Under the pieces are notes generated by a model. It saw only the letters and a program-made list of their open reading frames with translations, did no database searches and was not told the DNA's origin. 64,000 bases of DNA from Convolutriloba macropyga (lineage: Eukaryota): NCBI RefSeq assembly GCF_964194025.1, contig NC_134473.1, positions 59,210,001 to 59,274,000 on the forward strand. Reading direction: 5' to 3'. The translations under genes and the position numbers were made by a program. Of this stretch, positions 3,106 to 53,987 are shown in pieces (the first letter of the stretch is position 1; the number at the start of each line of letters is the position of its first letter).

Positions 3106-3265
3106 ACAAAACTATACTGATGGATAAATTCGCGTCAACAAGTCTGTGGATTGTGGCTTGCAAATTGACACACAGTAATAGATGGATAGAGCCCCATGGC
3201 TGCTGCAGACTAATCCATTCTACAGAAATCGAAACTCTGGGATATCGAAGCTCGAGAAACCAAAG
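3106..3265 (+). CDS. GNAT (LuxI/FeeM-like) acyltransferase paralog A, exon 2a (exon 1 lies outside the window)
   Basis: (D)KTILMDKFASTSLWIVAC...PHGCCRLIHSTEIETLGYRSSRNQ aligns with exon 2 of B and C; acceptor ttcaag|AC is at the homologous position. Confidence 0.8.
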
Positions 3266-3830
3266 GGATCTGTTTCCTTAAACATCAATTTTATATAATA
3301 TAAAATATAAATTTTTGTTTTTCATAAGCCCATGCTAACGCACAATGAATAATACCAAACGATTGTTTACGCCATGATTAAGTTCAAATTTCGACTCGAA
3401 CCCGAGTTGTTATTTACTTCGAGAGGGTGATAAGAACCGCGTGGTAAATGTCTCTAATCAACTCTCGTTGCGATTACAACAGTTGCATAACTTATAAACC
3501 TGTGGAGCCGTTAAGACTATTTCTTTCCGTCGCTTTTTTCTCGCCACTCTTGTAGAAACAGTGGCGAGAAAAGAGTGGCCCAAAGAAGTAGCCAATTACC
3601 GAAGCAGAGATTTGTCGCTGTTTCAAATTTCCGAAGTATTCATGGGGCACTAATAGGTTATTCCGTAGATAAGTTGAGCACCTGCTGTTCTGGCGTCGAT
3701 AGTTGATTAATTGCAAATATTCTGATAGTACCAGCCATTATAGTTAATATACATTAAAAGTGCTCTACTAAATTATTAAATCTTTTATTGCAATATTGAA
3801 CCGTGGAAGAGGAAACAGTTCCGGCAAAAG
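3266..3830 (+). other. Putative non-canonical GG-AG intron (565 nt) with terminal inverted repeat, specific to paralog A
   Basis: Removal gives CAA AG|T CTA = RNQSLVD, matching RNRSLVD in B. Exons 2a+2b = 160+86 = 246 nt, exactly the exon 2 length of B and C. ggatctgtttcct (3266-3278) pairs with aggaaacagttcc (3810-3822). Confidence 0.7.
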
Positions 3831-3916
3831 TCTAGTTGACCTTGGCAACGAATTTGGTGGCAAGGACTTGGTTGAGATCAACAGGTTTGCGTTGAGGAAA
3901 CAGTTGAGAAACCAAG
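3831..3916 (+). CDS. GNAT paralog A, exon 2b
   Basis: LVDLGNEFGGKDLVEINRFALRKQLRNQ(G), homologous to the 3' part of exon 2 in B/C; ends at a GC donor (CAAG|gcatgt). Confidence 0.8.
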
Positions 3917-3999
3917 GCATGTTTCCCATCAAATTTGGTATGAATTGCGGACTGGCTAAAGATGGAAAAGATGATTAAAAGAGCGATTCAATGGTCAGA

Positions 4000-4571
4000 C
4001 GGTTACATGACAATTTACCCAATTCCATTTTACCCAATGCCAATTTACCCTACGCTATTTTACCCGACCTGCCATTTTACCCAATGCCATTTTACCCAAT
4101 ACCAACTTACCCAATGCTCTTTGATCTTTTTGTTCAATTATCCGATTGCAGTCGCCATTAGCAGTCGCTATTACAAGGATGGTTTAAAATGTTTGTGGAC
4201 AATATAATCTCATGTTCGGTTGTAATATTTTCATATCAAGTCCCACAGGCCATTTAATTATATAGTCCGCTAATTCCATGTTCGGTTGTAATAGTTTCAT
4301 ATCAAGTCCCACAGGCCATTTAATTATATAGTCCGCTAATTCCATGTTCGGTTGTGATAGTTTCATATCAAGTCTCACAGGCCATTTAATGATAAATTGG
4401 CTAATTCCATGTTCGGTTGTGATAGTTTCATATCAAGTCCCACGGGCCATTCATTTTATAGTCGGCTAAATAGTCGTTCTGGTTAATTTAGCAATGGGGT
4501 AAATTGGGTAAGTTGGCATTCGGTATAATGGCATTGGGTAAAATTGAATTTGGTAAATTGTCCTGACACCG
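4000..4571. mobile_element. Non-autonomous DNA transposon (MITE) with CGG...CCG termini, subterminal ccattttaccc repeats and an internal 66-bp minisatellite
   Basis: Imperfect TIR cggttacatgacaatttacc / ggtaaattgtcctgacaccg; 6-bp direct repeat GTCAGA on both sides (3994-3999, 4572-4577); ~4 copies of a 66-bp unit at ~4211-4465. Confidence 0.8.
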
Positions 4572-4975
4572 GTCAGACATGGTCGGATATTGCTTTAAAG
4601 ACCAGCAAAATTGCTTTTACGAGCATTTCTAAATAAAAAGTGACGTTTTTTAGGAAACGCATTTAGTACTGCTTATATTTTTAGAGAGGAAAATTTTTGT
4701 CGAGCAAAAATTGCAGAACAGCAAAACCTATCGTATTGAAAGCAAGCAAATATTCAGACAATTAAATTTTTACCATTCGAAGAATTAAACCATTAGTAAC
4801 TTCAGTTAATATCATGTTTCTTCTTCTTATTATTAGTAGAACACCAAACCTATAATATTGATTTGAAATATTGTGCTAGAATAATTTTTTTGCGCGTAAA
4901 TTTCAATGAACTGTTATCAAATTAATTTACGTTTCACATTTAAAAGAAACAAAGCAAAACACTGAAGCGCAAAAC

Positions 4976-5069
4976 ACCGACAGCTCTCTTGCATATCCGA
5001 CAGCTATCCTGTAATATCTTGCAATATGGTGCACGATCTTGCAAGATTCTTATAAGATAGCAGTCGGTA
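4976..5069. repeat. Short palindromic element (MITE remnant)
   Basis: accgacagct... / ...agcagtcggt inverted ends with internal tcttgca repeats. Confidence 0.45.
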
Positions 5070-5747
5070 ATAGACTAGGTCAATTTTCAGTTTAGAACTC
5101 AAACAAAATCGCAGCGTGTCACAGCATATCAGACAGGTTGAAGGCGGCGAAGGTTAATGGCGACGTGTTCTATTGTACTATCAAACACCCCAACTTTTTT
5201 ATTTTGTGCATCGTGTTTATGTTTATTAGCCGGCGTCAGCCTCTCAACGGCTCTTGGTTTTTTTCAATTCAAGGAATTCGAAATGTATTGGGGGCGTTGT
5301 CTTATTTTAAGATCTGTTCACACATTTTCATGATTTCTGAAGTCATAATGGAGTAGTGATTTTGGTCATGCCGAAACAGGAAATGGAGCGAAAAAGAGAG
5401 TGGTTTTGCGACATGAATTTTTTTCATTCGAATATTCAAGTACAGTAAAAAATCGTTATTTGATCGAAAATTCGCTTTCTGGCTAGTAGTTTTCTGTTTT
5501 TTTTTGTTCACATGCGACAATTTCACATTGATTTTTATTGTTTTTCAACTTTTTGGATAGGATTTTCTTCTAATTGGTTTTCCCAATCCATTCATACTTC
5601 CTTCTAGGCCTAGTATTTTGTTTGAACCAAATTTCCCTCTCTCGCAAGTGGTTTTTTGTTCACATGCGGCATTTTGACTTTGATTTTCTGTTTTTTAATT
5701 TTTTGATCTGATTTTTTTGGAAATAGTTTTCCCAATTCACTCCTAGT

Positions 5748-8060
5748 CTTATGATGAGATAGTTTGTGATTTGCAGAACCTTTGACTGGTGCTTGGAGCT
5801 AGAGGTGAACAAGAGCAGCAAAGGAATGAGAAAAAATGAGAGTCGCTGCCGAAAGCTGAAATGTGACTAAACAAACAATCTGGGTTAAAATTGAAGTAAT
5901 AAAATATATGAAATCAGTTTTCACGCAATTATCCTTGATTTGAGGTAAAATTGAGCTCCAACACTCGGGCTACTGTTGCCACAATCCCCCTGACGGGGAT
6001 AGAGAGGGATCGTGTAGGTTGGGATCGACAGACCTTCGTCCCGATATTTTCCGGGTATTTTTTCTCAAAATATGCGACAAAGTGATGCTTTTAAAATCCG
6101 ACAATTAGAGGAAACATTTCGCGTAGGTCAGAGCATCACCGGAAGAAGTGGCTTTTTCTCAGTTATTTTTTCGCGATAGATTGGTTTTTCGAAGTGATGC
6201 ATTTATTTTTTCTACTATGCGTTGTTTTGTCATGTGAGTTTGCAGCGGCGATTTTGCTTGCAGCTTCAATTTATGGGGGATTGAGTTCAAACGTGATACA
6301 AAGTTATTATTGAAGAGATGGCATGTTTTTTTGTATTAAATTGTATTGACCGTTTGTTCTCTCCGTTTGCTTGGTCAAAATTTAGAGACAGGAATGGTAT
6401 CAAGGCAAGTCTTGAGCGCTCACTGTGCACTTATAGTTACCCTAGTCGATAAGACTCAATAAAAATGACCAGATACTTGTAGGGAACATTTCATTTGTTG
6501 AGTTTCGAACGTAAGAAAGATTCGGGATGTTAACATAGTGACAAATAGCTACAGTTGAAAACTAAACCTAGGAATAATTTCATAGGTATCAAAAGTGAAC
6601 ATAATTACGATTTGAAAGAAAAAAACAAACCTGAGGTCTTTGTTTATTTTTTTAAACTAAAACAACATGCCTTAAGAGGACATATAATTGACTGTATTGA
6701 GTTGCGTATCTTTAACCAGACCGTTTTATGATGAGATGGTTTGTGATTTGCAGAACATTTGAATGGTGCTTGGAGCTAGAGGTGCACGAGAAATCAGTTT
6801 TCACGCAATTATCTTGATTTGAGGTTAGGTTGAGCTCCAGCGCTCGGGCTACTGTTGCCACAATCCTCCTGACGGGAATAGAGGGGGACTGGGTATGTTG
6901 GGACCGACAGACCTTCGTCCCGGTATTTTCCGGGTATTTTTTCTCAAAATATGCGAGAAAGTGATGCTTTTAAAATCCGACAATTAGAGGAAATAATTGG
7001 CGTAGGTCAGAGGATCAACGAAGGAAGTGGTCTGTTTCCTGTTATATTTTCGCGGTACATTGGTTTTTCGATGTGATATTTTTATTTTTTCTACTATGCG
7101 TTGTTTGGGCATGTGAGTTTGCAGCGGCGATTTTGCTTGCAGCTTCAATTTATGGGGGATTGAGTTCAAACGTGATACAAAGTTATTATTGAAGAGATGG
7201 CATGTTTTTTTTGTATTATATTGTATTGACAGTTTGTTCTCTCCGTTTGCTTGGTCAAAATTTAGAGACAGAAATGGTATCAAGGCATATCTTTTGAGCG
7301 CTCACTGTGCAATTATAGTTACTCTAGTCGATAAGACTCAATAAAAATGACCAGAAACTTGTAGGGTAAGAAAGATTCGGGATGTTAACATAGTGACAAA
7401 TAGCTACAGTAGAGAACTAAACGTAGGAATAATTTCTTAGGTATCAAAAGTGAACATAATTACGATTTGAAAGAAAAAAACAAACCTGAGGTTTTTGGTC
7501 GTTTTTTTAAAAATAAAACAACATGCCTTAAGAGGACATGTAATTGACAGTCTTGAGTTGCGTATCTTTAACCAGACCGTCTTATGATGAGATGGTTTGT
7601 GATTTGCAGAACCTTTGACTGGTGCTTGGAGCTAGAGGTGAACGAGAGCAGCAGAGGAATGAGAAAAAATGAGAATCGCTGCCGAAAGCTCAAATGTGAC
7701 TGACCAAACAATCTGGGTTAAAATTGAAGTAATAAAATCTATGACATCAGTTTTCACGCAATTATTCTTGATTTGAGGTAAGGTTGAGCTCCAACACTCG
7801 GGCTACTGTTGCCGCAATCCCCCTAACGGGGATAGAGGGGGATCGGGTAGGTTGGGACCGACAGACCTTCGTCCCGATATTTTGCGGGTATTTTTCTCAA
7901 AATATGCGACAAAGTGATGCTTTTAAAATCCGACAATTAGAGGAAATATTTGGCGTAGGTCAGAGGATCAACGAAGGAAGTGGTCTGTTTCCTGTTGTAT
8001 TTTTGCGGTAGATTGGTTTTTCGATGTGATGCATTTTTTTCTACTATGCGTTGTTTTTTT
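5748..8060. repeat. Tandem array of ~0.86-0.98 kb units (about 2.5 copies) in the last intron of paralog A
   Basis: ttatgatgagat(a/g)gtttgtgatttgcagaac recurs at ~5749, ~6726 and ~7582, each followed by hundreds of near-identical bases. Confidence 0.9.
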
Positions 8061-8406
8061 TGTGAAATTTTTAAATTTAAATTGTTTCTGCTTTTCTGAG
8101 TTTCTTCTCATAGGACCTGGGATATTATGAGAACGGTCATCACCGTCTTTTTTGGCGCTTTTTTTCTTTAGAACGTAGGATAGGAAATAATTTCGTTTTT
8201 TCTTTAGAGCTAGGTTAAGAAAAAAAAATGGCGTGTGTGTGTGGTTGTGAATATTGCAATTTTGGAAGTTTGTGAATTTTGGATGAGAAAGATTCTTTCA
8301 TTAATAACATCCTGAATTGACTAGGAAAAACAATAATGTTAATTATTTGGCTGAGAAAGTGACATAAAACAGGTTTCTAGCGGATGTGGGAAATTTGCCA
8401 AAAAAG

Positions 8407-8786
8407 GAGTTGGACGCGAAATATTGAATATTGCACTTGACATACATCGATGTCTGTGGCCGGATCGACCTCTACTTTACACGACTAATGTGAAAGTTAC
8501 GAAGGAACACGTAATGAACAAACTAGTAGAAACTCAACCAAATAGGTTTTCGCTTCAAATCTTCGGAGATCCTTTTCGATACGAAGAACACGATCCACAT
8601 TATTGCCATACTCATATATTACGGAACAAGTTTACGAGTAATAGCGAGTTTTTATCAGATTCTCAATTCAGAAAAGCTTTGAACCATTCATTGCCAATTA
8701 CAATAGTGAGTTATAAAGATACTGGTTCTTCGCCAAATGAGAAGCAAAATTTTATCTTCGGAAATGTTGCATGGCAAATGAAATAA
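8407..8786 (+). CDS. GNAT paralog A, last exon
   Basis: (G)VGREILNIALDIHRCLWPDRPLLYT...FGDPFRYEEHD...; homologous to the last exons of B and C; TAA stop. Confidence 0.85.
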
Positions 8787-8949: not shown

Positions 8950-11344
8950 GCCCCAAATGATCATAACACTATATCTGTGTTCTTTACCGACCTCCTTCAG
9001 CAAATCTGGATATTTTTTTTAATTTCTTTGAATCAATGCCCCATTTTCTGCGAACCGAAAATTCGAAAACTTTAATTTTTGGCGATTTTAACATTAATAT
9101 CTTGGAACAATCAACAATGAAGAAGATATTGTGGAATAATTGAATCGCTTGGATATCGAATCCAAAATAATGAACCAACTCGAAAAACAAATCTCACTTC
9201 TTGCATAGATCATATAACCGATGATGATTTGGTTTGCAAAATTTATGAAATTTCTATCTCAGATCATTATCCAATTTCGAGTAAAGTTCCCTATTGGGTG
9301 CACTCTATTGACCAAAAAAGAATTATAAAATACCGGAATCTGAATCAATTGACTGACCAAAAACTGCTAAACTTTTTGTTTTTGTTAGATCAAAACTTGA
9401 ATAAAAAATCAACGGAATCAGTCGATGGCAAAATTCAGTTTTTAGTTTCGACAATTATGCAAACTCTAAACAGATACGCGCCAGAAAAAAATAGTTATAA
9501 CTAAAAACGGATGTCCCTGGGTTAATAAAGAAATTAGGAATCTTCTTAAAAAACGCGATCAAGCCAGAAAAAAATGGTTTTCGTCTGATAAACCAAAAGA
9601 TAGAGAGAAGTATGTTTCTTTGAGAAATGAAATAACAAGCAAAATTAGAAAATAGCGAGCATATTTTTCGCGGTTGACAGATCAGTAAAATAGCAGAACA
9701 ATTTTTGATACCTTAAAAATTCTAAAGATCCCAAAAAAGAGACGCAGCAAGATGTGGATTTGGACGCTGACCATTTAAATGAAAATTTTAACTATCGGAG
9801 AAAAAATTCTGTCTGATATTCCTAAACTACAGCAACGCCAAAGCAGTAATTGTTTCCTCATTTTGTACAAATCATTATTTACAAAATTATTTACAAAATA
9901 TTGGTTGACTTCATCTCCAAAAACAAAGTTTTCTTGTAGACAATTTGGTTTTCGTTCAAAAAGATCATGTATTCATGCCATAGCTGAAATAACTGAAAAT
10001 ATAAGATTGTCTATGAATAACAAAAACCCTTGCGCATCAGTTTTCCTTGATATAATAAAAGCTTTTGATACCATTGATCACTCACTGTTACTCAACAAAC
10101 TAGAAAGTTTTGGTTTTAGGGGCAATTTTAAAAAGCTTATTCAGTCCTACCTCAACAGCAGCCAACAATATGTTTTCTTCCAGTCCAAAACCTCTGAGAT
10201 TAAAAATATTAAAAATGTTGTCCCACAGGGCTCTGTGCTAGGCCCACTCCTCTTCCTAATTTTTGTAAATGATCTGCCAACAAATATGCAAAAATTGGAA
10301 ATCACATTGTTTGCTGACGATACCAAGATACTTTGTGGTGGAAAAGATATTGAAAAAAATCTCAAAGATAGCATTAGGGAGGTGATATTATGGTTCAATG
10401 AAAACAAACTTTGCGTTAATTCTAAAAAATCTCAGTTGATGTAATTTGGTAAAGACTTAGGGCTTAATTTGAACCCAATTTTATCAGATTGTGAACTACA
10501 AGAATCTGTAAAATATATAGGTATAACTCTTGATAGAAAACTGAATTTTGATTTTCATATTCAACAAACTATGAACAAATTAAAAAGGTGTTTTCTATAG
10601 AATTCGCGACTATTATACAATTTCAAAATTGATACAGTTTTATAACGTGTTTGCTAAGCCAGTGATCTCTTAAGGTCTATTGGTTTATGGCTGCACAAAC
10701 AAAAAGAGACTAACAAAAATTGATATGTGCCAACGAAAAATTTTGCGAGCCATCTTCTATCGAAAGCGGACAGATAGCCTTCAACATTACTACAGAAAAC
10801 ACAAAATACTCACTGTTTTTGACTTCTGTTTCTTGAACTTCTGAAGGAAACTGTTGAAGAAATTGCAAAGAGATCTCCTTGCTCTTTCATTAATCTTGAA
10901 AACGTGTCGTCGTGTAAATACCACACACGGAACCTCAAAAAAAAATTAATAAGGCAGGTCAAATTTAATAATGCAGCACTTGGAAACTCACTGCGGTTAA
11001 GGCTGACCAAGACTTATAATTTTTGCAAATCGAACTACCTTTTCCCTCAGATATTGAAATTCAAAAAATGAATTCGAAGCAGCTCAAAAATTTAGTAGAT
11101 CAAATTTTCCAAAACTATCTTTTCGACAGTGTCTTTTTTTACGTTAATTTTTGGCTGATTAGTGGCTGAGGTACACACTAACTCGTTCCTATTTTTCTTT
11201 AAAGTAAAATTTAATTGATAAATTTTTCAAAAGGGACGTCACCTAAACGAGCTGTAAAGCTTATCTGACGTACCTCTTGAAAACGTGTATAGTTATCAAT
11301 TGTAAACTGTTTTCAAGGAAGTTAATTCAACTTATAACTTATAA
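8950..11344 (+). mobile_element. 5'-truncated, degenerate CR1/L2-type LINE (endonuclease remnant + reverse transcriptase)
   Basis: VLYRPP and GDFNIN (APE) at ~8970-9100; SDHYPI; RT motifs QFGFRSKRS, VFLDIIKAFDTIDH, VPQGSVLGPLLFLIFVND, LFADDT; 3' tail of short repeats (ttcaacttataacttataac); many stops and frameshifts. Confidence 0.92.
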
Positions 11345-18588: not shown

Positions 18589-18794
18589 CGGACCCTAGTA
18601 ATGTAGTATATCAGAATAGATCTTCATGATACATATCTTGAAAAAGTTCTGATGTAATATATTACTATGGTCCGAGTGAGTCAAAACCCACATGGGATTA
18701 AGTTTCTAAAAACATTTCGAGCGGGCCATTTCGGTATTCCAAACAATCATTTTGAGACCTTGAATAAATGTATTTAAATATCTAGAGTGACAGA

Positions 18795-18999
18795 ATGAGA
18801 TCCGCTCTCAAACACCAGTTGTGCACTCTCTCTTCGTCTCTGAAGAACGTAGTTTATGTGGTAACAAATGCCAACCACACTCCAGATGTTGTTTCTGTTG
18901 CCGGCAGTATCCTATATGATGTCTACATCAAAGAATTGGGCTGGAAGTTTGGCAAGGACAACCCATCGCAAATCAGAGTTGAACGTTGCTCAAAAACAG
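18795..18999 (+). CDS. GNAT (LuxI/FeeM-like) acyltransferase paralog B, coding exon 1
   Basis: MRSALKHQL...GSILYDVYIKELGWKFGKDNPSQIRVERCSKT; close paralog at 38441; donor ACAG|gtggat, phase 1. Confidence 0.85.
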
Positions 19000-19887
19000 G
19001 TGGATGATAAGGAACTAATTCAAACCGTTCTTAAAATTGTAAAAACAGATTCAAAATTATAACAGAGATCAAATAATTTATTTACGAGATCAAAACTATC
19101 ATTGAGTTGCGCAGTTTCCGTTGTAGACATTTGGAACTATTTTTAAGGGTGAATTGATTTGTTCGGTTGAAAATTACTCGAAAGCAAGAAATGTAGGGAG
19201 ACACTAAAAAATTTCACTTTCAATCCAGACATTTAACCAGTGATTTATTGTTGAAATTGAACAAATACTGATAAATACAATTAACTACAATTAAGACTAA
19301 GGTTTTTAATTTGATTGAAGAAATTCGTTTAGTACTTTTACTGCCGTTTGAAGGCACCAGGCATGAAGTGAAGCGATGCTCTTATTGGCTACAGGATACG
19401 GTTTTATCATATTTTTTTCCAGATCTGCTCAATTTCAAAGCTGGGAGAAACATCTTTCGGTATAGGGTAGCGGATAAGAAAGCAATCCACAGTTGTGAAA
19501 GCGTTTCTCGACTTTTTTGGTGTTTCTAGCCAAATTGAATACTGCTCATTTTTTAAAAGGCCCCATATGTTTACCGCAAAAATTTTTGGATAGCAAAGTG
19601 TGTCACATTTTGCGATGCAAAATATTAGAAATCACCGAAAAACCGAAAGCTGACATTGATTGAAATTTCATACGGAAAAAATAGATAGTTCGGTTGTCTT
19701 GAAAGGGACAGCCAGTTGATTACATCAGCAAGGAGTTTGAATTTTAGACGGTTGTAAACTTCGTCAATATTTTTAGCCTTTTAAATTTTTCACCATATTT
19801 GAAATAGATCATTTATCATTTCCAAATACCTCTCAAAACTATACGGCCAAGGGATCATTACTTCTTGTCCTTATTAAAAACATATTT

Positions 19888-20630: not shown

Positions 20631-20876
20631 ACAAAATGATACTGACGGATAAATTTGCGTCAACAAGTCTATGGGTCATCGCGTGTGAACTAACCGGCAA
20701 TAATGGAACAGTAGAGCCCCATGGTTGCTTCAGGCTAATCCATTCTACAGAAATCGAAGCTTTGGGATATGAAAGCCAGCGAAACAGAAGTCTGGTCGAT
20801 TTGAGAAGATTTTATGGTGACAGTGGCTTAATTGAGATGAACAGACTAGCGTTGAGGAAACAGTTGAGGAATCAGG
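20631..20876 (+). CDS. GNAT paralog B, exon 2 (246 nt)
   Basis: (D)KMILTDKFASTSLWVIAC...PHGCFRLIHSTEIEALGY...LIEMNRLALRKQLRNQ(G); acceptor tgaaag|AC, donor CAGG|gtacac; phases match the neighbouring exons. Confidence 0.85.
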
Positions 20877-21779
20877 GTACACTTCCCCTCCTATTTCTTA
20901 GGGTTTAAATTTTGTTTGTGGTTTTCAGTGAGCTTCGCCGTATTCACTGCAATCTTCGTGTGGGAGAAAAAAATGTTTATCACCGCCGTTCACAGCAAAT
21001 TGATGTTTTCTGATTATACCTCGGTCCTGGTAGTAAAATAACTGACAAAAAGACCGCTATTCCACGCCGGTCCAAAGAGGTGCTCAATTTTCGGGCAAGA
21101 ATATATTTAGCCAAATTAGAAAATATTACTAAATATTACGGATTTTTATTTAGTTGTACATGTGTTCAATGATTTTAGAAAATGAAGATTCTCAAGGACG
21201 CTCATGGAGGAAGTTTGCATTAATATAAACTTGGGGCAAATCAATTGTGTTCATATAGTTTAGTCTTTGACCTCTTCGATTTGAAATTTTTTTAAAGGGG
21301 GGAACTGAATTTCCGTCATTCTTCTGTCTTCTTGGACTCATAACTTTCTGCTTGGTTTCAAAGTCAGTGAAATGTTTGCAAAGAACCTGCTCAATTATGA
21401 CAAAAAACATCAATTTCCGAAGCACTTCCTTCAATTTGTCAAAAAAAGAAACCTCATTGATGTCATCCTAATACCATTATTCTAAAGTTTGGAGGAAAAG
21501 ATCAAAGAATTAAGAAAATGAGGAGGCTCAGTAATGTGCGTTCGCAAATAATGTTCCAACCTCTTAATTGTCTACCAAAAGAGAAGGGGATAAAAAATTT
21601 CAAAATTCAACATACCGTTCAACAATTCATTGATTGAATCAAACAATCTACCTTAGAGGGCCAATGAGACCTGTCATTGACCAACGTTGCTAAAAAAACG
21701 TTTAAAAAAGTTTTAAAAATTTGCTTTTTGAAAATATATTACTTTAAAATAATAAAAATCATTATATATCAAGACAAAT

Positions 21780-26572: not shown

Positions 26573-26868
26573 GAGTTGGATTCGGGATAATAAATACAGC
26601 AATTGGGGTGCATTATCGGGAGTGGAGAAACCGACCTATAGTGTTCACACCTCAAGCAAGTACAGCCAATCAGCATGTCATCACAAAGACTATAGAAGAG
26701 AACCCCAATTTATATTCTGTTGGACATTATGGTGAGCCATTTCGGTACGAGGAACATGACGACAACACTTGTCAGATTATGATTATTCAAGCTAAAATGA
26801 ACACCCGTTCTAACTTTAGAGGTGATCACGATTTAAACAGGGCTTCAAACTTTACAGTATTGAACTAA
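26573..26868 (+). CDS. GNAT paralog B, last exon (full protein 248 aa)
   Basis: (G)VGFGIINTAIGVHYREWRNRPIVFTP...YGEPFRYEEHDD...; acceptor aattag|GA; TAA stop; AATAAA at 26974-26979. Confidence 0.85.
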
Positions 26869-38000: not shown

Positions 38001-38440
38001 AAGCCAAACTCTTTGAAGTAGCATTTTGTGGATATTCTATAAACGCCAAAAACACGTTGTTTAAGAATTTGGTGTACTTATTCTGCGTTGATTGTCATCA
38101 TTCAGCTGGTTAATACTATTACTCATTATGCTAAAACCAAAATTCGCACAAGAAAATTGAGCGATGTAAGTAGAACTTAATAATAATTAGAACAAAAACT
38201 TATTTTCTGATTGCTGCAGTCAAGAATTCTTGAGTTTAAAATTGGGCGACTCACAACATCTAAAAATATATCAAAAAAGTGCTTCAATTTGGCATCCAAT
38301 ACAGCGGTTGTTGAATTTTTTAACTATAAAACCCTCGAACCAAGTGGTTGATTCAATTTTATTTCATTTTAAGCCAATTTTCAGTTACCCAGGTTGCATA
38401 CAGCTGTTTTCTCATTAATTTCGTCATTTAAGACAAGAGA

Positions 38441-38645
38441 ATGAGAGCAGCTGCTAGACACCAATTGCTTACTCGTTTTTCATCTCTGAAGAATGTACTC
38501 TATGTGGTAACAAATGCCAGTCACACTCCAGATGTGGTGTCAATAACTGGCAGTATCCTCTACGATGTCTTTATCAAAGAACTGGGCTGGAAATTTGGCA
38601 AGGATAACCCTTCAAAACTCAGAGTTGAACGCTGCTCAAAAACAG
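38441..38645 (+). CDS. GNAT (LuxI/FeeM-like) acyltransferase paralog C, coding exon 1
   Basis: MRAAARHQLLTRFSSLKN...ILYDVFIKELGWKFGKDNPSKLRVERCSKT; 205 nt as in B; same donor. Confidence 0.85.
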
Positions 38646-40536
38646 GTGGATGATAGGGCACTATTTTGGAACATTATTTTCCTTTTTGAAGAGGAAACAT
38701 GAAAGTTCATGTTCAACCGGGTTCTATTTCTTTTTTACGCCGATTTATTTTACCCCCGCAAACTTTTCAGTCCAAAACCAATTCCCAATATCTTACGTAT
38801 CTCCTGTTTTCGGTGTAAATACCTAAATGCTGTACACAATTCCCAATCTTTTAAGTTAATCGTACCAATTATTTAAAGCATTATGGTTGGAGTGAATCAA
38901 TCGGTGGTAAATAATAGGGTGTCAAATAAATAGGGGCAAAAAACGGTCAACCTCATAACCAATAAGTTCAGTATTAGGAATATTAACAACAATCAGTATT
39001 TACGAATTGCCTGTTAAAAAATGAAACAAGGGCGGCTGTTCGATTTTGCGCTTATATATAAAGTGATACGAAATGCTCTTAATTTTTCATGTTGGTTGGT
39101 AAGGAGGTCGTTTAAACTCTTCTTGAAACACTTCTCGTGGGTCTTTTCAATCTGGCACAGGATTCGGTTTTGGATCTTCTTAGTCTGGCCAAGGGTACAG
39201 TCAAAGTTTGCTGTCTGGCTTATACATAAATTTTATTAGGTGCGAGCTGCACCCCCTTTTGCGCGAAGCAAGTCCGGCTGTTCCAAACCTCTCTTTTGGG
39301 TCGAGGATCACATCTTTTAGATGTTAAAAATTCTACTGCTAAATATATTTAAACATCACAAATTTACGTTCCGAGACATTAACAGCTGTTTAATTTACAA
39401 TTGCCAATCTGTTGTTTACTTGATTGGCCTAGCTTAGAAAATTTCAAAAAAGGAAAAAAAATGGAAGTAGGTTGTGAGTATAGGATTCTTTCACACCGGT
39501 TCTGAGAATTTTGCACCAAAAAAGCGGAAACAAAAAAGTACCCACCACGAATCCAGAATTTGAGACTCAAAAATGGGTCACTGAAATTTCAAAGTCATGG
39601 AGTAGTTCAAGCCTGTCGAACTTTTCGAAAATGTCTCAAATTTTTCTCGACAAAATATCAACGACCCGCAAAAACTTCACAAGAAAACTGTAATTACACT
39701 TTGTTTAGGCTTTGATTTTTTAAAAATTAATTTCTTAAAGGGGAGGCCGTACATTATTTAACTATGAGAGCAACAATAAACAGATTTTCAGAAAAAACAA
39801 AATTAATAATAAATTGCTTTCAATTAGGCCATGAGCATTACCATAATTAACCAAGCTACAACAAAGCACAACCCACTTGCTAAGTCATCGAAAGGTCCTT
39901 ACGGTCCTAGTAGAATGATGCCAAGAAGAAGCACTAAGGTTTATGGGAGATTTTGTTCGTGAGAAGAAAAAAATCAGGGTAGATAAAAAAAGAGAGTGGA
40001 GACATCTTCTTTATTGACAAAATAGTTATCGTAGTTATTACTAAAATTATTATGGAAAATTTTTTCTTGGTTTTGCTTAAGTTTTTGCTCTTTTTTAAAG
40101 AAATCAGGTTAAAGTTTTAGTATGAAGTTTAGTAGTTTTCGAATGCTCTTTAGGCTGAGAACGCTCACAGTGTTAGTTAATTTTAGTGGTCGCGCTTTTG
40201 TTCTTGTTGACTGAACAGTTTCTGTCTCTTTTTTTTTGTTGTAAGGTCATCAAGAGAACTGATTTCAAAGTTTTTCTCTTAGTATTTCAATTAGTTTTTT
40301 GATTAGTAGATTTTTGACAAAAAAAGTACAACACAGAACTGTCAAACCAAGTTAATAATAAGCATCTCATCTGATATATAGAGCAAATACTTGACCCTTT
40401 TGTTCAAACAAAAGGAAACAAGACGTCTGGCATGGTTCTTTGAGTGCCACAAATCGTTGCAACAATCGTATTTGAAAGCATTATAACAACATATCGGAAT
40501 GGAATTCGAAACGTTTATATTAGAAATGGGTTTTTG

Positions 40537-40695
40537 GGATCTCCTCCGTTTATCCACCCAGCTTAGTGGGTGCATATTATTTGCACCCCCACAAACGCAG
40601 GTGCCGTAAATTTACATAATGATTTACTAAGTACTGGCATGTGCTCTGTATCAGTCGAGCGCATAACGTACTGGGGGTACAAAAGGGAAAGATCT
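40537..40695. mobile_element. GGATC-ended MITE (family with cccagcttagtgggtgcatatta core)
   Basis: ggatctcctccgttt...gggaaagatct ends; core shared with the copies at 55877, 57807, 59947 and 60194; a fragment also at ~41680-41810. Confidence 0.75.
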
Positions 40696-41971: not shown

Positions 41972-42217
41972 ACAAAATGATACTGGTGGACAAGTTTGCG
42001 TCAACATGTCTGTGGATTGTGGCATGTGAACGAACCAGTAACGGCGGAAGGATAGAGCCCAATGGTTGCTTCAGACTTATACATTCTACAGAAATCGAGG
42101 TTTTGGGATATCAAAGCCAGCGAAACAGAAGTATTGTCAATTTGAGAGAAGTTTACGGTGGCAGTGGCTTAGTTGAGATGAACAGAATAGCATTGAGGAA
42201 GCAGTTGAGACACAAGG
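41972..42217 (+). CDS. GNAT paralog C, exon 2 (246 nt)
   Basis: (D)KMILVDKFASTCLWIVAC...PNGCFRLIHSTEIEVLGY...LVEMNRIALRKQLRHK(G); acceptor ccaaaag|AC, donor AAGG|gtacag. Confidence 0.85.
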
Positions 42218-45200
42218 GTACAGTTTCCCCCCTTAGCTTAAAGTTCAAACTTTTGGTGACAAATTTGACCAATTTCATAGGTTTCCTCATTACCCACATA
42301 CAACGTGAACAAAATATGATCAAAGAGAATTGGTAATGTGCGTTTGCACATAATGTTCGAAGACTTCTTTTTGATAAAATTGTATATCAATTGAAAGCTC
42401 AGATCTTTTCGTTCGCTAAAAATGGACCAATTAAGGAGGTGGGGACACAAACGGCAAATATCCTGAAAGTTAATATTTATCCTCGAGTTAATCCTGTCTG
42501 AATTAATTGAAAACAACCAAATCTTTCCTTATGTGCCCTTTGACCAGTAACAGTAAACAAGCTTGACGGTTTGCTTACTTCCAGAATGATTCTAGTGGCA
42601 TATCTTTTTTCAAAAATTTATTATAAATTTAAAATAGTTTGCATAACTAGATCACAAAGACCGCTTTCATCGATTTTCCATAAACAAATTATCTTGGAAC
42701 TGAAATTTAAACTCGAACTAGATGTTTTAGTTCGGAATATTTTAACGAGAATCTGCTTTCTTCTTCAATATATTAGACCAAAACAGGTATCATTAGTGAA
42801 AGTTTATAGCATTTCTTGGACAAAAAACGAGTTACAAAAAACAGTTTTAAAAACTCTCAAAGATTTCAACCCTTTTAGACAGTTTGACAATGGCGTCTAC
42901 CGATTGGCTTTAAAAAATACGCTGTAATTTTTACGGGTTGAAATACACTTTCATAAAGTCTACGACAACAGTGATAGACTATTTCCGGTTTATTTTTGAA
43001 AATAAGATTATTTTAGCTGCTTTCTTTTGGTACAATGGAAATTAACTCTTAGGAGACGAGCCTTGCAATAAATCTTTATCTAAGGAAGATGTGATTTTCA
43101 AGAAATCTTCCTCAAGGTAAGTAAAATTCCTCTTGAAAAGCAGGATTTCTCTTGTCTCGCTTGATTCTATAGATATACCATATAAAAATACATCTCAAAT
43201 GTTTTTTTTTCAAACAAATAAACTGCTCAGAGAAGCGGTGATTGTCTTGAGCAGTATACTGGTTTAATTTTTAAGACAGACAGATACATCCACAGAAACA
43301 CTTTATCATTAGAACTCAGTTGCTTGCTAATGAAAACCTACCAAGTGTTTGATTGAATTCAACGTACTGTTGCCTAAATTGGTGCAGGTCAGCTGGCCTT
43401 TATTTTTTTCCATTTATTTTCCTCTGCCATACATCGTTAAAATTAATCCACTGGGCCGAATAAATTGAACGTATGAGCTGAAACTTAAATCGCGTCTCTG
43501 AATAGCCATCTAAACTGTAAATTTTTGGTAAATCTTGAATAGTTTTGGCCTCATTATAAAAGTATGTACAATCAAGTTCAATCAAATCAAAAAGCATTAA
43601 TAAATAAAAGAGAAAGTTTGATTCTAGAAAGAAGAGTTATTGCTCCTGTTTATACAGTTTTTCCATTCAAACCAATTGATTGCTCTTTTTGCTGGGAGAC
43701 AATTTAGGCACCGGGATAGCTTTCGTTGGCTCTGCTTGTTTTAATGCTTATTCTTGGTGTTCTTGGCTAACATCGTAGCTGTTGATTTGTTCGTTGTTTT
43801 TCCATGTGCGGTAAGATATCAAATAACATTTTTATTCGTAAAATAGAAAAACTCGTCAATCAATTTTAAGAATTCAACATGTGAAAGCGAAACGAAGATA
43901 TATAAAGATGGACTGAAAAGAAAAGAAAAATAAAGCTCTCTCGTGGTGGTGGGGTTGAACTACAGCCTCCGGGTTGAACTACAGCCTCCGGTTTGTTCAC
44001 ATAAAAAGACCGCTGCTCATCGAGTGTTTGCTTCAGCAGCAGAGATGTGTAATTGTGTTTCGAAAAATAAGGCTTATTACTAAAAAAACAGCGTAAAAAA
44101 TAGTCTTCTCGCCGGGTGAGGATCGAGCCTCTGCGACCCCGTTGATCATAGGATTAGAGCACTGTGCAACAACTCGCTGTTTTAGTTGTAGAAATTGCAA
44201 TTATGTTTATGAAGGCAAGCGTTAAGACTCGTTCAAATGATTTGAGGGAAGGTAAAAAGAAGTTCAGTTATTACAGTTAATAACTTGAAAAAAGTAAAAT
44301 TGTAACAAGTAGAAAAACAAACTAATCATAAGAAGGAAAATAACAGGCAGTAAAAACTGCTATGCTAAACCAAACCTCAAAACCTTTGAACCGTACCGCG
44401 CATATTACTATATAATGTCGTTACTTGTATAACGATAACTCAACCGTGATAATGATATCATTGAAATGATTTTGAAAAATAAGAAGGTTGTCTTGGTTGA
44501 AAATGAAACTATTCGATTAAGATGATATTTTTTAATTGAGTTTCTTGGTGTTTTGCTAATGATGTTGAGATTTTCCAATTGATAAAAACTGAGCAATCTA
44601 ATGGTGTTTTTTCGTGTGTTTTTTACAGACAAACTCCGATTACACTAGGTGAGCGGCTGGCTTGGCTGCAATATTAGGACAGAACACGTGTTTGTTTGAA
44701 ATTTGGCTCGAATTAAGTAAACAAGCGGCTAGCAATAAATCATTGGCTGATAGCTGTTCTACGAGATACGAACTGGAATGTAGACGAAATAAACAAAATT
44801 AAGAAGACTGCATGATATTGCTCTCACGCCAACCATTTTCCACTGCTTCTTTCCTTTCGTTCCGAAATCATTAACCGTTTGGCCATTGTAATCTGATTGT
44901 TTTTTGATGTCGACAGATTTTTCTCGTCAGTAGTAACTTGGCAATGTCGTCATTGATAAATGAAAAGAAGAAACAAAGGCAAGTAGGCTGTTTTCGCTGT
45001 GACTCCGACCATCGCTTTCTGTGTCAGTTAACGAACTAGCTTGGCAGAGCCTCCGAGCCATTCCGAACTCTTCTGAGTTGCTTGCGCGGCAATTTTTATA
45101 TAGAAAATGTGTGTTCTCATGACGTTATTTGTAATGGGTTTCGTTAGCGAGGTTCATACCACTGGTCTGAGGGAAAAGGAAACTGAAAATTTTTTTTCGA

Positions 45201-45229
45201 GTGTTTGACCAAGTTGGTAGTTTACCTTT

Positions 45230-48239: not shown

Positions 48240-51200
48240 GCAGAAGACAGCGTTATGAGTAACTCCAGAGAGGTTTTGGGATCCTGTAAACATCCTTAGC
48301 CAATTATTCTGTCGGTTTCTTTGACAATTTTCGAGACTTTTTGCTCAATTTTTTGGCCTCGAACCTGTTAGTTTTTAGATAACGTTTCTATGTATGATGC
48401 GCACGGGATCATTATTTCAAGTTGAGTTGTCTTTGTATTTTAAGAACAAGGAAACTCGACATCTCGTAGCGTAGCAGCTAGGCAAACAGCGAAAGAACAA
48501 AGCGGTTTATCCATCTTTTCTGCTCAAGAGCAGGAAATGAAAAAAAATCTTTTGAAACTTCTACACTTCACAACTTTTGTACACGCCTTAGCGGAAATTA
48601 TGTTTATGAGGCACGAATCATGCTTTCAAATAAGCTGGAAGTAGCTTTTTAGTACCATAGTGTAAAATCATATGTTGTTCAGAGTTTGAACAATTATCGA
48701 GCTATTCCCGCAGGACGCTGTATCGCCTTGCAAGACAATCGTCCAAAAAATTGCGACAGCCATTCAATTTTGCACAAAAATTTCGTAGATTTTTTTCAGT
48801 TTCCTGACTTAGTTTTGATTTCGGCTTCTTTTTCACCATCTCAGTCATGCTTAGGACAAGAAAATCCTAATTGAAACGTAGATACAACTTTAGTTTTTTC
48901 GACGAGTGCAAATACCAAATTCGCGACAGTCATTTTTACGCTAAATGAACTTAAAGCGCTGATTTTTTCAAATATTGTTGCTAAATTTAAATCAATGGAG
49001 CTACTCCGTACAGCGTCAGGGCAACAATTACCAGTGCCAAAAAATATTCAATACGTCAAAATGTCATTTTGTTAAAATGCTCAGACAGCCAATTTAGCAT
49101 AAAAATGCTTAAAGCGAGATAACTTATATCGGAATAACGTATGTTCACAACTATTGTATGTAAATTTGATTAAATTGGCCATAATTGAGTGGACCGTATA
49201 AAGACTTTATGTGAAACTATGACAAACAAAGATGAAATCACATTATCAACTTAATTATGATAAAAATAAGCTATTAATACCAACTGCTAATTAGAATTTT
49301 GGATTTACTACAAGATCAACGGGGAAAAAATTAGGTTTTATGGGATAGGGTATTCTTGACATTGAGAAAATTGTCAGCTCCAGAGAGCTTTTTCGATCCT
49401 TTAAAATTTCCTAGCCGACTTTGTTCGTCTTTTTCTCTGATAATTTTTGAGGTTTTCCGCTCAATTTTTTGGCCTCGAAATTGTTAAATTTTAGATAACG
49501 TTTGTATGTATGATGTGCACGGGATCATGATTTCAAGTTGAGTGGTCTTTGTATTTTAAGTACTTGGAAATTCGACATCTCGTAGCGTAGCAGCTAGGCA
49601 AACAGCGAAAGAACAAAGCGGTTTATCCATCTTTTCTGCTAAAGAGCAGGAAATGAAAAAAAAATCTTTTGAAACTTCTACACTTCACAACTTTTGTACA
49701 CGCCTTAGCGGAAATTATGTTTATGAGGCACGAATCATGCTTTCAAATAAGCTGGAAGTAGCTTTTTAGTACCATAGTGTAAAATCATATGTTGTTCAGA
49801 GTTTGAACAATTATCGAGCTATTCCCGCTTGACGCTGTATCGCCTTGCAAGACAATCGTCCAAAAAATTGCGACAGCCATTCAATTTTGCACAAAAATTT
49901 CGTAGATTTTTTTCAGTTTCCTGACTTAGTTTTGATTTCGGCTTCTTTTTCACCATCTCAGTCATGCTTAGGACGAGAAAATCATAATTGAAACGTAGAT
50001 ACAACTTTAGTTTTTTCGACGAGTGCAAATACCAAATTCGCGACAGTCATTTTTACGCTAAATGAACTTAAAGCGCTGATTTTTTCAAATATTGTTGCTA
50101 AATTTAAATCAATGGAGCTACTCCGTACAGCGTCAGGGCAACAATTACCAGTGCCAAAAATATTCAATACGTCAAAATGTCATTTTGTTAAAATGCTCAG
50201 ACAGCCAATTTAGCATAAAAATGCTTAAAGCGAGATAACTTATATCGGAATAACGTATGTTCACAACTATTGTATGTAAATTTGATTAAATTGGCCATAA
50301 TTGAGTGGACCGTATAAAGACTTTATGTGAAACTATGACAAACAAAGATGAAATCACATTATCAACTTAATTATGATAAAAATAAGCTATTAATACCAAC
50401 TGCTAATTAGAATTTTGGATTTACTACAAGATCAACGGGGAAAAAATTAGGTTTTATGGGATAGGGTATTCATGACATTGAGAAAATTGTCAGCTCCAGA
50501 GAGCTTTTCGATCCTTTAAAATTTCCTAGCCGACTTTGTTCGTCTTTTTCTCTGATAATTTTTGAGGTTTTCCGCTCAATTTTTTGGCCTCGAAATTGTT
50601 AAATTTTAGATAACGTTTGTATGTATGATGTGCACGGGATCATGATTTCAAGTTGAGTGGTCTTTGTATTTTAAGTACTTGGAAATTCGACATCTCGTAG
50701 CGTAGCGGCTAGGCAAACAGTGGAAGAACGAAGCGGTTCATCCATCTTTTCTACTTAAGCGGAGGAAATGAAAAAAATATTCTCTTGAAACTTCTAAATT
50801 TCACAACTTTTGTTCACGCCTTAGCGGAAATTATGCTTATGAGGCAGGAATCATGCTTTTAAATATGCTGGAAGTAGCTTTTTAGTATCATAGTGTATAA
50901 TGATACGTTGTTCAGTGTTTGAACAATTATCGAGCTATTCTCGCAGGACGATGTATCGCCTTGCAAGATAATCGACCAAAATATTGCGACAGCCATTCGA
51001 TTTTGCACGAGAATTTCGTAGAATTTTTTTCAGATTTCTAACTAAATTTTGATTTTGGCGTCTTTTTCACCATCTCAGTCATGCTTGGGACGAGATAATC
51101 CTAATTGAATCGTAGGCACAACTTTATAGTTTTTTCGACGAGTGCAAATAACTAAATTTTGATTTTGGCGTCTTTTTCACCATCTCAGTCATGGAAATTC

Positions 51201-53590
51201 GACATCTCGTAGCGTAGCAGCTAGGCGAACAGTGAAAGAACGAAGCAATTTATCCATCTTTTCTGCTTAAGCGGAGGAAATGAAAAAAAAGTGTATAATG
51301 ATACGTTGTTCAGTGTTTGAACAATTATCGAGCTATTCTCGCAGGACGATGTATCGCCTTGCAAGATAATCGACCAAAATATTGCGACAGCCATTCGATT
51401 TTGCACGAGAATTTCGTAGAATTTTTTTCGTATAATTTTTGAGGTTTTCCGCTCAATTTTTTGGCCTCGAAATTGTTAAATTTTAGATAACGTTTGTGTG
51501 TATGATGTGCACGGGATCATGATTTCAAGTTGAGTGGTCTTTGTATTTTAAGTACTTGGAAATTCGACATCTCGTAGCGTAGCGGCTAGGCAAACAGTGA
51601 AAGAACGAAGCGGTTCATCCATCTTTTCTACTTAAGCGGAGGAAATGAAAAAAATATTCTCTTGAAACTTCTAAATTTCACAACTTTTGTTCACGCCTTA
51701 GCGGAAATTATGCTTATGAGGCAGGAATCATGCTTTTAAATATGCTGGAAGTAGCTTTTTAGTATCATAGTGTATAATGATACGTTGTTCAGTGTTTGAA
51801 CAATTATCGAGCTATTCTCGCAGGACGATGTATCGCCTTGCAAGATAATCGACCAAAATATTGCGACAGCCATTCGATTTTGCACGAGAATTTCGTCGAA
51901 TTTTTTTCAGATTTCTAACTAAATTTTGATTTTGGCGTCTTTTTCACCATCTCAGTCATGCTTGGGACGAGATAATCCTAATTGAATCGTAGGCACAACT
52001 TTATAGTTTTTTCAACGAGTGCAAATACCAAATTCGCGAAAGTCATTTTTACGCTAAATGAACCTTAAGCTCCGATTATTTTAAATTTTGTTTCTAACTT
52101 TAATCCAATGGAGTTACTCCGTACAGTGTCAGGACAAATATTAGTAGTGCCAAAAATATCCAATACGTCAAAATATCTTTTTGTTAAAATGATCAGACAG
52201 CCAAATTAGCATAATAATGCTTCAAGCGAGATAACTTATAACGGAATAACGTATGCTCAAAACTATTGTTGTAAAACTGATAATTTGGCCATAATTGAGT
52301 GGACCGTATAAAGACTTGATGTGAAACTATGACAACCAAACATAAAATCACATTATCAACTTAAGCATGATAAAAATAAGATTGTAATACCAACTGCTAA
52401 TTAGATTTTTGGGTTCACTAAAAGATCAACGGTAAAAATTTAGATTTTATGGGATAGAGAATTTTTGACTTTGAGTAAATTGTCAACTCCAGAGAGTTAT
52501 TGGGATCCTTTTAACATTCTTAGCCAACATTTTTCGTCTTTTTCTCTGCCAATTTTCGAGAATTTCCGCTCGATTTTTTGGCCTCGAAACTGTTAATTTT
52601 TAGATAACGTTTGTATGTATGATGTGCACGGGATCATGATTTCAAGTTGAGTTGTCTTTGTTTTTAAGTACATGGAAATTCGACATCTCGTAGCGTAGCA
52701 GCTAGGCGAACAGTGAAAGAACGAAGCAATTTATCCATCTTTTCTGCTTAAGCGGAGGAAATGAAAAAAAAATCTTTTGAAACTTCTAAACTTCACAACT
52801 TTTGTACACGCCTTAGCGGAAATTATGTTTATGAGGCACGAATCATGCTTTCAAATAAGCTGGAAGTAGCTTTTTAGTACCATAGTGTATAATGATATGT
52901 TGTTCGGTGTTTGAACAATTATCGAGCTATTCTCGCAGGACGATGTATCGCCTTGCAAGATAATCGTCCAAAATATTGCGACAGCCATTCGATTTTGCAC
53001 GAGATTTTTTTTTCAGGTTCCTAAATAAATTTTGATTTTGGCGTCTTCTTCACCATCTCAGTCATGCTTGGGACGAGAAGATCCTAATTGAAACGTAGGC
53101 ACAACTTTATAGTTTTTTCGACGAGTGCAAATACCAAATTCGCGAAAGCCATTTTTACGCTAAATGAACTTTAAGCGCCGATTTTTTTCAAATAGTGTTG
53201 CTAACTTTAATCCATTGGAGCTACTCCGTACAGGACAAAAATTACCAGTGCCAAAAAAATATCCAATACGTCAAAATATCTTTTTGTTAAAATGATCAGA
53301 CAGCCAATTTAGCATAACAATGCTTAAAGCGAGATAACTTATATCGGAATAACGTATGTTCACAACTATTGTATGTAAAACTGATTAATTTGGCAATACG
53401 TGAGTGGACCGTAGAGGACTTGATGTGAAACTATGACAACCAAACATGAAATCACATTATCAACTTAAATATGATAAAAATAAGCTTGCAATACCAACTG
53501 TTAATTAGATTTTTGTATTCACTAAAAGATCATTGGGAAAAAATTAGGTTTAATAATTAAGATAGGGTATTTTGGCATTGGGTAAATTGT
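48240..53590. repeat. Tandem array of ~1115-bp units (~4.5 copies, with an internal rearranged partial unit) in the last intron of paralog C
   Basis: cgacatctcgtagcgtagc at ~48457, 49573, 50688, 51200, 51565 and 52681; the first two units are nearly identical. Confidence 0.95.
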
Positions 53591-53676
53591 CATCTAACTT
53601 TTTCGTACGCATTGGAAGGCAAAATATATGGGTGTTTGAGAGAACAAATTTGGGGGAAAGTACTCTGAACAAATAG

Positions 53677-53987
53677 GGGTTGGAACGGGGCTTGTGAATA
53701 CTGCAATTGGTTTGCATTATCGCGAATGGGCGACCAGACCTATAGTGATCACACCTCCAGCGAGTACAGCCAATCAGCACATTGCCACAAAAACTATGCT
53801 AGCGAATCCCAGTCTATATTCTATCTCAAGTTACGGTGACCCGTTTCGTTACGAGGAGCATGACGACAGTACTTGTCAGATAATGATAGTTCAAGCTAAA
53901 CTGAACAACAAACACAACTTTACAGGTGATCATGAATGGAAAAAGGCAACAAATATATTAAATTTACTTCAAACTGATGTTTTTTAA
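53677..53987 (+). CDS. GNAT paralog C, last exon (full protein 253 aa)
   Basis: (G)VGTGLVNTAIGLHYREWATRPIVITP...YGDPFRYEEHDD...LLQTDVF*; acceptor aaatag|GG; 3' UTR similar to that of B. Confidence 0.85.

Follow-up and report, generated by a model that had tools for sequence, protein, structure and literature searches.

Three tandem intron-bearing GNAT-fold genes in the acoel Convolutriloba macropyga and their probable foreign origin

How does an animal genome come to carry a cluster of genes that resemble bacterial signal synthases? The question is raised by a 64,000-nt stretch of the acoel Convolutriloba macropyga (RefSeq assembly GCF_964194025.1, contig NC_134473.1, positions 59,210,001 to 59,274,000 of the forward strand), which we call the window. 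An initial annotation, made from the sequence alone, had seen three tandem intron-containing genes for GNAT acyltransferases in this window and had proposed that they descend from a gene acquired from bacteria. We call these genes A, B and C. In our judgment A–C are probably functional host genes that encode foreign GNAT-fold N-acyltransferases, from a gene that entered once from a viral or eukaryotic source, then acquired introns and was triplicated.

Gene models and a fourth, intronless paralogue

A motif search of the window found three paralogues on the plus strand, each with its motif set in order, and all of the motifs quoted in the initial annotation were present. Gene A has SLWIVA at 3141, VEINRFALRK at 3871 and PFRYEEHD at 8571; gene B has LYDVYIKELGW at 18912, SLWVIA at 20666, GCFRLI at 20723, IEMNRLALRK at 20831 and PFRYEEHD at 26737; gene C has LYDVFIKELGW at 38558, GCFRLI at 42064, VEMNRIALRK at 42172 and PFRYEEHD at 53841. 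We built exon models from splice sites and reading frames (stop-to-stop frames in the local DNA). Genes B and C each have three exons, encode 248 and 253 amino acids, and have coding sequences with lengths divisible by 3. Their four introns are all GT-AG, are all in phase 1 and lie at identical codon positions: intron 1 is placed after ...RCSKT, and intron 2 splits the Gly codon of the R-N/H-Q/K-G-V-G loop. Both introns recur in gene A, whose exon 1 lies outside the window. The cluster is thus complete in the window for B and C and incomplete for A. The bounds first given for it, 3106 and 53987, proved to be exact, the former being the first base of A exon 2 and the latter the last base of the C stop codon.

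We accepted these splice models mainly because the spliced products align through both junctions with the intronless paralogue D, described below, and with other intronless homologues; spliced B and C align with them end to end and have no gaps at the junctions. The exons are as follows; all but exon 1 of gene A lie within the window, on its plus strand.

G000:C6:59199949-59200135, gene A exon 1 (MSALNKLRN...KCLKT), donor AAAACAG/GT, about 10 kb upstream of window base 1, located by tblastn of B and C
3106..3265, +, gene A exon 2, first part (DKTILMDKFASTSLWIVAC...GCCRLIHSTEIETLGYRSSRNQ)
3266..3830, +, gene A paralogue-specific insertion or extra intron of 565 nt, with 12-nt inverted ends GGATCTGTTTCC / GGAAACAGTTCC
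3831..3916, +, gene A exon 2, second part (SLVDLGNEFGGKDLVEINRFALRKQLRNQ-G), followed by a GC donor at 3917
8407..8786, +, gene A last exon (GVGREILNIAL...GDPFRYEEHDPHYC... stop)
18795..18999, +, gene B exon 1 (ATG; LYDVYIKELGWKFGKDNPS), donor ACAG/GTGGAT
20631..20876, +, gene B exon 2 (DKF, SLW, GCFRLI, IEMNRLALRKQLRNQ-G)
26573..26868, +, gene B exon 3 (completes the RNQGVG motif A; PFRYEEHD; stop)
38441..38645, +, gene C exon 1
41972..42217, +, gene C exon 2, which alone gives a weak match to Pfam Acetyltransf_5 (E 0.18, 12.9 bits)
53677..53987, +, gene C exon 3 with stop

When searched as a whole, the 1.18-Gb assembly yielded exactly A, B, C and one intronless paralogue on another contig, which we call D. 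It is an uninterrupted open reading frame (ORF) of 212 amino acids at G000:C1:22821949-22822587 (L001:4950-5588) on the 89-Mb contig C1, and it is 31–35% identical to B and C over its full length. D is a lone ORF in ordinary AT-rich non-coding DNA. We considered whether it lies in an endogenous giant-virus island and rejected this, as there is no neighboring ORF of at least 90 amino acids within 1 kb and the base composition is ordinary. Single exons of A–C are too short for Pfam, and single-exon scans of Pfam and NCBIfam gave nothing usable; we used D as the handle for family searches and for structure.

Genes A–C sit on a 75.7-Mb contig among retroelements, and contigs of four DNA runs, from up to three samples, span exon 2, the exon-intron boundary and the intron. 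Because independent DNA runs cover the locus and the setting is one of retroelements, contamination is ruled out, and the genes are integrated in host DNA.

The three copies have diverged in a way that points to function. Nei-Gojobori ratios of nonsynonymous to synonymous divergence (dN/dS) are 0.24 for B-C, 0.24 for A-B and 0.21 for A-C, so all three copies are under purifying selection. Synonymous divergence (dS) is 0.69 for B-C and saturated for A-B and A-C, so the triplication that had been proposed is not only real but old. Eleven residues are invariant over 15 family members (E40, W43, P50, S51, D69, W77, R94, E127, N129, R130 and F192 in D numbering), and A, B and C keep all eleven. The genes appear to be functional.

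Fold and family of the proteins

The initial annotation had assigned the proteins to the GNATs of the LuxI/FeeM/OlsB branch, and profile scores together with a structural model of D bear this out. D scores 22.7 bits on Pfam Acetyltransf_5 (PF13444), just over the gathering cutoff of 22.4. Of the Pfam families, PF13444 alone has its cutoff exceeded, both by D and by the relatives P0003 (26.8 bits), P0004 (28.6), P0010 (24.7) and P0013 (33.8). On the FeeM family (PF21926) the same four relatives reach 17.3–23.8 bits, under the cutoff of 27, and D gave no match at E<=10; D also gave no match to Autoind_synth (PF00765). Among 45 relatives, at E<=0.01, 32 match PF13444, 27 match PF21926 (best E 1e-10) and one matches PF00765 (E 0.0032). 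The link of the acoel proteins to PF21926 runs through intermediates only.

An AlphaFold2 model of D, made from a 15-sequence alignment, has a mean predicted local distance difference test score of 86.3 and a predicted TM score of 0.84, and it shows a GNAT fold, contrary to the outcome that had been named as fatal to the assignment. Only D was modeled; B and C are joined to the fold through their full-length alignment to D. Foldseek against the Protein Data Bank (PDB) put BjaI, an acyl-homoserine lactone (AHL) synthase that depends on coenzyme A (CoA), first with E 3.5e-6, followed by TofI, LasI and FeeM. With VIA-align, 995 of 999 GNAT chains had Z>=5, with a top Z of 15.9, and the longest alignments, 163–173 residues including the N-terminal extension, were those of TofI, FeeM, LasI, RpaI and BjaI at Z 14–16. 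In the ESM Atlas the nearest predicted folds are the OlsB and FeeM clusters (TM 0.67–0.73). A feature search agrees with the OlsB/FeeM placement and also lists a FeeM-like cluster dominated by Nucleocytoviricota. A PDB sequence-profile search found only generic GNATs, at E>=9e-4. Of the possible placements, that in the LuxI/FeeM/OlsB branch has the best support.

The known members of the branch each resemble the acoel proteins in part. FeeM, the N-acyl amino acid synthase of uncultured soil bacteria (PDB 2G0B; PF21926), is a GNAT fold with an N-terminal extension, the same order of conserved elements and an E-x-(S/N)-R on strand beta-4; it matches the D model with Foldseek E 6e-5, TM 0.57–0.65 and a VIA-align Z of 14.8 over 163 residues. 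FeeM uses acyl carrier protein (ACP) thioesters, acyl-ACP, as substrates. The acoel family differs from it in having Asn for Ser in ExSR and its own NPS and G-x-PF-x-YE-x-x-D motifs, and A–C differ further in being eukaryotic and intron-bearing with a CoA-type RxxGxG loop. OlsB, the L-ornithine N-alpha-acyltransferase, gives an ESM Atlas TM of 0.71 over 183 residues; unlike the acoel proteins it is bacterial, longer (about 260–320 amino acids) and serves membrane-lipid synthesis, and the acoel genes have no OlsA partner or lipid context.

The LuxI-type AHL synthases (LasI 1RO5, TofI 3P2H, BjaI 5W8A, RpaI 6WN0; PF00765) are the best overall structural matches, with Z 14.2–15.0 over their aligned residues and W, D, R and ExxR landmarks in similar order and spacing, and UniRef names a rotifer relative 'Acyl-homoserine-lactone synthase'. 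LuxI proteins carry R-Y-x-V-F, a DxxD and an ExSR strand, and we compared these as motifs, not by alignment. In the acoel proteins the N-terminal motif reads L-Y-D-V-Y/F, with Leu for the first Arg, just one Asp (DKF) is invariant, against two in LuxI, and the strand reads ExNR. This ExNR occurs throughout the subfamily, with E127, N129 and R130 invariant in 15 sequences. Membership in LuxI proper is not supported by these motifs, and the doubt about true AHL-synthase activity that was voiced in the initial annotation was justified, as there is also no usable PF00765 match.

We infer that A–D are acyl-CoA-dependent N-acyltransferases that make N-acyl amides. They would be cytosolic proteins of about 210–270 amino acids with a GNAT fold, in the Acetyltransf_5/FeeM/OlsB/LuxI branch, and would move an acyl chain from acyl-CoA, or less likely from acyl-ACP, to the amino group of an amino acid or a similar amine. 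The active-site core would consist of the ExNR strand (the ExSR position of LuxI and FeeM) with R94, D69 and W43 in D numbering. In A–C the RxxGxG loop (R/Q-x-x-G-x-G/A), which reads RNQGVG in A and B and RHKGVG in C and is split by intron 2, would bind the CoA pyrophosphate.

Relatives, origin and competing explanations

We scored a profile of D and the A–C exons, without the exon 1 pieces, against 1.84 billion representative proteins and obtained 63 matches at E<=1e-3. After the genome's own pieces, the closest matches (E from 5e-31 to 3e-17) are ORFs of full length, on contigs that measure about 1 kb and come from ENA, JGI and Logan assemblies; the source of one close cluster is Tara Oceans protist-fraction DNA. 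The contigs of these close relatives are eukaryote-like, with long non-coding flanks and in one case a microsatellite, and their ORFs are intronless. Giant-virus matches come next, on dense, ORFan-rich contigs: P0014 is on an 847-kb contig listed as a viral genome (an IMG/VR uncultivated virus genome, UViG), P0045 is on a 394-kb contig with a single-ORF Rpb1, and P0012 and P0013 adjoin kinase, F-box, DUF4116 and eIF2-alpha genes. We did not find P0013 in IMG/VR. A word-indexed protein search returned only self or few matches, and in JGI metagenomes there was no confirmed relative (alignment A8 of the family).

The giant-virus contigs of one metagenome sample (ERZ27250632) each carry one member of the GNAT subfamily, and one giant-virus member, 431 amino acids long and extended at its N terminus, lies about 7.6 kb away from an Rpb1 encoded by a single ORF. 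Two positions of giant-virus members are given here.

L007/L008/L012 (847-kb UViG), 8001-8690
L015 (394-kb contig), 10001-11296

Bacterial members are weaker matches, with E of about 1e-9 or worse, and often precede or are fused to PAS-histidine kinases. In the metagenome-assembled genome of an uncultured bacterium (L009 5001-10651, the same DNA as L017) we saw an operon with a stand-alone GNAT, next a GNAT-PAS-kinase fusion and after it two more PAS kinases; the GNAT is directly upstream of the kinase or fused to it. The pairing of a GNAT with a PAS-HATPase histidine kinase in a bacterial operon suggests a module of signal synthase and sensor.

Among the matches whose source names we checked, the only named eukaryotes are bdelloid rotifers (Rotaria, Adineta) and a foraminiferan transcript (Bolivina, P0025), and there are no named metazoans other than the bdelloids. 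The rotifer proteins (Rotaria magnacalcarata P0095, Adineta steineri P0096) are members of the same subfamily, and they too are animal genes without wider metazoan relatives. They are only 24–30% identical to D, however, and fall in a different clade.

We placed the sequences in a maximum-likelihood tree of 52 rows (LG+C20, unrooted), for which the bootstrap is not fully settled. The four acoel genes are in a clade (97/97) with eight intronless ORFs on eukaryote-like marine contigs. The sister group of this acoel-containing clade (96/86) consists of giant-virus and bdelloid rotifer sequences, and the verified bacterial members form a separate clade (100/96). In approximately unbiased (AU) tests, holding the four acoel genes to one clade raised the log-likelihood by 8.3 (p-AU 0.72), and grouping the acoel genes with the bacterial side was rejected (p-AU 0.000275). 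The immediate source of the acoel genes looks viral or eukaryotic, and the gene type is ultimately bacterial. The proposal of a gene acquired from bacteria is therefore supported as far as a foreign gene of bacterial fold type is concerned, and is not supported for a direct bacterial donor. The family also does not look like a vertically inherited metazoan one, since among the matches checked its named animal relatives are only the bdelloids, in a different clade; the bdelloid genes look like a separate, independent acquisition. In the literature we found no description of this GNAT family in acoels, rotifers or giant viruses.

Two other origins deserve weighing against this one. A LuxI/FeeM-like gene could have passed directly from a bacterium to an acoel and gained its introns later, which would agree with a fold class and Pfam families that are overwhelmingly bacterial and with the N-terminal LLYxVYIxExxWxFxxxNPSxLR motif that the bacterial members share. 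Yet no close bacterial homologue turned up among the 1.84e9 representatives, the bacterial matches are the weakest (against 1e-31 to 1e-17 for the eukaryote-like contigs), and both the separate bacterial clade and the AU test speak against it, so we regard such a transfer as very improbable. Alternatively, the gene could be an old eukaryotic one that was passed on vertically, disappeared from almost all animals and was taken up from eukaryotes by giant viruses and rotifers, the acoel copies then being native. This history fits the eukaryotic look of the closest relatives, with their long non-coding flanks and microsatellite, the foraminiferan transcript and a tree without a root. It would have to explain an extremely patchy distribution (63 representative clusters in 1.84e9), bdelloids as the only named metazoans among the matches checked, and close relatives without introns, which is unusual for old animal genes. 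We consider this history quite unlikely. Scarcely credible, in our view, is the idea that the genes are pseudogenes, contamination or an assembly artefact. Gene A does have a non-canonical donor and an insertion, and a search for RNA runs of this organism turned up DNA-type data only, but the frames are intact under the dN/dS values given above, we estimate the chance of a 216-codon open frame in DNA of 33% GC at about 5e-8, and the locus combines chromosome-scale contigs, spliceosomal introns, host retroelements and coverage by independent DNA runs.

As to what the enzymes do, these GNATs could serve another purpose than the synthesis of long-chain N-acyl amides, for example N-acetylation of small molecules or proteins in the manner of ElaA or Naa. 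VIA-align ranks the ElaA-type structures 1xeb and 5z6n first, tied within 1 Z unit, the PDB sequence matches are to generic GNATs, and motif A of A–C would suit acetyl-CoA too. We think that this is a minority possibility, though one to be taken seriously. The ElaA-type alignments cover about 142 residues, compared to the 163–173 of the AHL synthases and FeeM that include the N-terminal helix-strand extension; Foldseek and the Atlas rank AHL synthase, FeeM and OlsB highest; and ExNR stands at the ExSR position typical of LuxI and FeeM.

Several points weigh against a foreign N-acyltransferase of viral or eukaryotic source, and we put them together here. On the side of origin, source names were checked for about half of the 63 matches, the tree is unrooted with many weak deep forks as well as its unsettled bootstrap, and we defined the groups compared in the AU tests once the tree was known. 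The eight closest relatives may come from acoels, from other animals, from protists or from viruses; should they prove to be animals related by vertical descent, the foreign origin would move deeper and would not be removed. On the side of the proteins, the contigs of the four DNA runs cover the intron continuously and show no exon 2-exon 3 joint, the exon models rest on homology and splice consensus, and the acoel proteins, as far as profile scores go, stay below the Pfam FeeM and Autoind_synth thresholds. The ElaA-type small GNATs tie in VIA-align Z (15.9 and 15.4), so the substrate is not readable from the fold. Finally, the RxxGxG loop, which had been described as motif A, is found in A–C and is not conserved family-wide, being absent in D (FRGGRIT), P0003 and P0004.

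Introns with paired ends, proposed history and setting

D and every close homologue that we examined are uninterrupted ORFs, and A, B and C share two introns. The introns therefore entered the ancestor of A–C before the triplication. This fits the suggestion of the initial annotation that introns were gained after arrival.

It had also been suggested that all of the introns are of an unusual stem-closed type, and this is so for six of the seven. In these the stem starts at intron base 1–3 and its partner arm lies 8–21 nt before the 3' splice site; the exception is the first intron of gene A, at -9.4 kcal/mol. Cognate stems have folding free energies (dG) of -18 to -24 kcal/mol. For thirty non-cognate 5'/3' pairs taken from these genes the mean is -10.3 +/- 3.2 and the best value -16.2, and random partners within the intron were as good as the cognate arm in 0%–1.3% of cases. 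The introns with paired ends are 19000-20630, 20877-26572, 38646-41971, 42218-53676, 3917-8406 and 3266-3830, and the following stems, all on the plus strand, were located in them.

19002..19016 (GGATGATAAGGAACT) with 20596-20610 (TGTTCCTTATCATCA), +, B intron 1 stem, dG -20.7
20877..20900 (GTAC..TTCCCC, from the donor G) with 26537-26560 (GGGGAA..GTAC), +, B intron 2 stem, dG -18.3
38647..38670 with 41932-41953, +, C intron 1 stem, dG -23.7
42218..42248 with 53637-53664, +, C intron 2 stem, dG -18.4
3917..3955 (GCA.TTTCCCA.TC, from the GC donor) with 8369-8399 (GATGTGGGAAATTTGC), +, A last intron stem, dG -22.0

Between B and C, the stem arms stand out as islands of conservation. In the last intron of A both arms differ from those of B and C and yet they pair (-22.0 for the cognate pair, against -9.9 to -17.3 across paralogues), and the change of the donor from GT to GC is matched by an A to G change in the 3' arm. 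We take the fact that paired ends are both conserved and compensated between paralogues as an argument for function in at least some of the intron-end stems of this genome.

The 565-nt element of gene A can be removed in frame in two ways. Removal as GG..AG (3266-3830) restores the B/C reading exactly, and removal as GT..AG (3272-3818), inside the inverted ends, adds six residues. The element looks like a miniature inverted-repeat transposable element used as an intron, and this would fit introns born from transposons.

Taken in order, the history that we favor would begin when an intronless ORF entered the acoel lineage, a single time, with a giant virus or another eukaryote as its most likely source. 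A duplication would then have produced the line of D and the ancestor of A–C. This ancestor would have acquired two phase-1 introns with base-pairing ends before its tandem triplication, and gene A would later have taken up the inverted-repeat insertion, which probably serves as an intron. One can go further and propose that a quorum-sensing-type N-acyl synthase carried by giant viruses was passed to animals at least twice, to acoels and to bdelloids, that in the acoel it was domesticated by a transposon-like gain of hairpin-ended introns and was then triplicated, that its products are N-acyl amide signals to microbial or algal partners, and that the stems aid the pairing of splice sites. We offer this wider scenario as speculation and think it unlikely as a whole.

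Near the genes, the window contains two retroelement features, which we list as context only.

686..1780, -, non-LTR retrotransposon endonuclease ORF (Exo_endo_phos), inside the 13-kb first intron of gene A
9779..10444, +, reverse-transcriptase fragment (RVT_1), between genes A and B

Two further ORFs without assignment lie near the endonuclease ORF, within 686-2867 on the minus strand, in the same intron, and ten other ORFs of the window have no Pfam domain. In intron 2 of gene B, the word depth of the DNA runs rises to about 1.5e5 at 25700-26099 and 21500-21699, compared to about 50 elsewhere, which marks high-copy repeats. In all four paralogues a pyrimidine-rich tract ending in AG is found 5–16 nt 5' of the ATG, at these positions.

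18775-18794, gene B
38421-38440, gene C
L001 4930-4949, gene D
G000:C6 ~59199930-59199948, gene A

Such a tract and AG before each ATG may suit an acceptor for trans-splicing (spliced leader) or for an intron in the 5' untranslated region.

To our knowledge, few foreign genes are well supported in animals other than bdelloid rotifers, nematodes and arthropods. Here a single genome has both the intronless D and three intron-bearing tandem copies, and intronless relatives are found in giant viruses and marine eukaryotes. With such a series of copies and relatives, the order in which arrival, intron gain and duplication happened can be tested directly. Products of this enzyme class include AHLs, which are bacterial signals, and N-acyl amino acids, so this acoel, with its four copies maintained under selection, may produce lipid-amide signals or defense compounds, if the enzymes have the chemistry that we have proposed for them.

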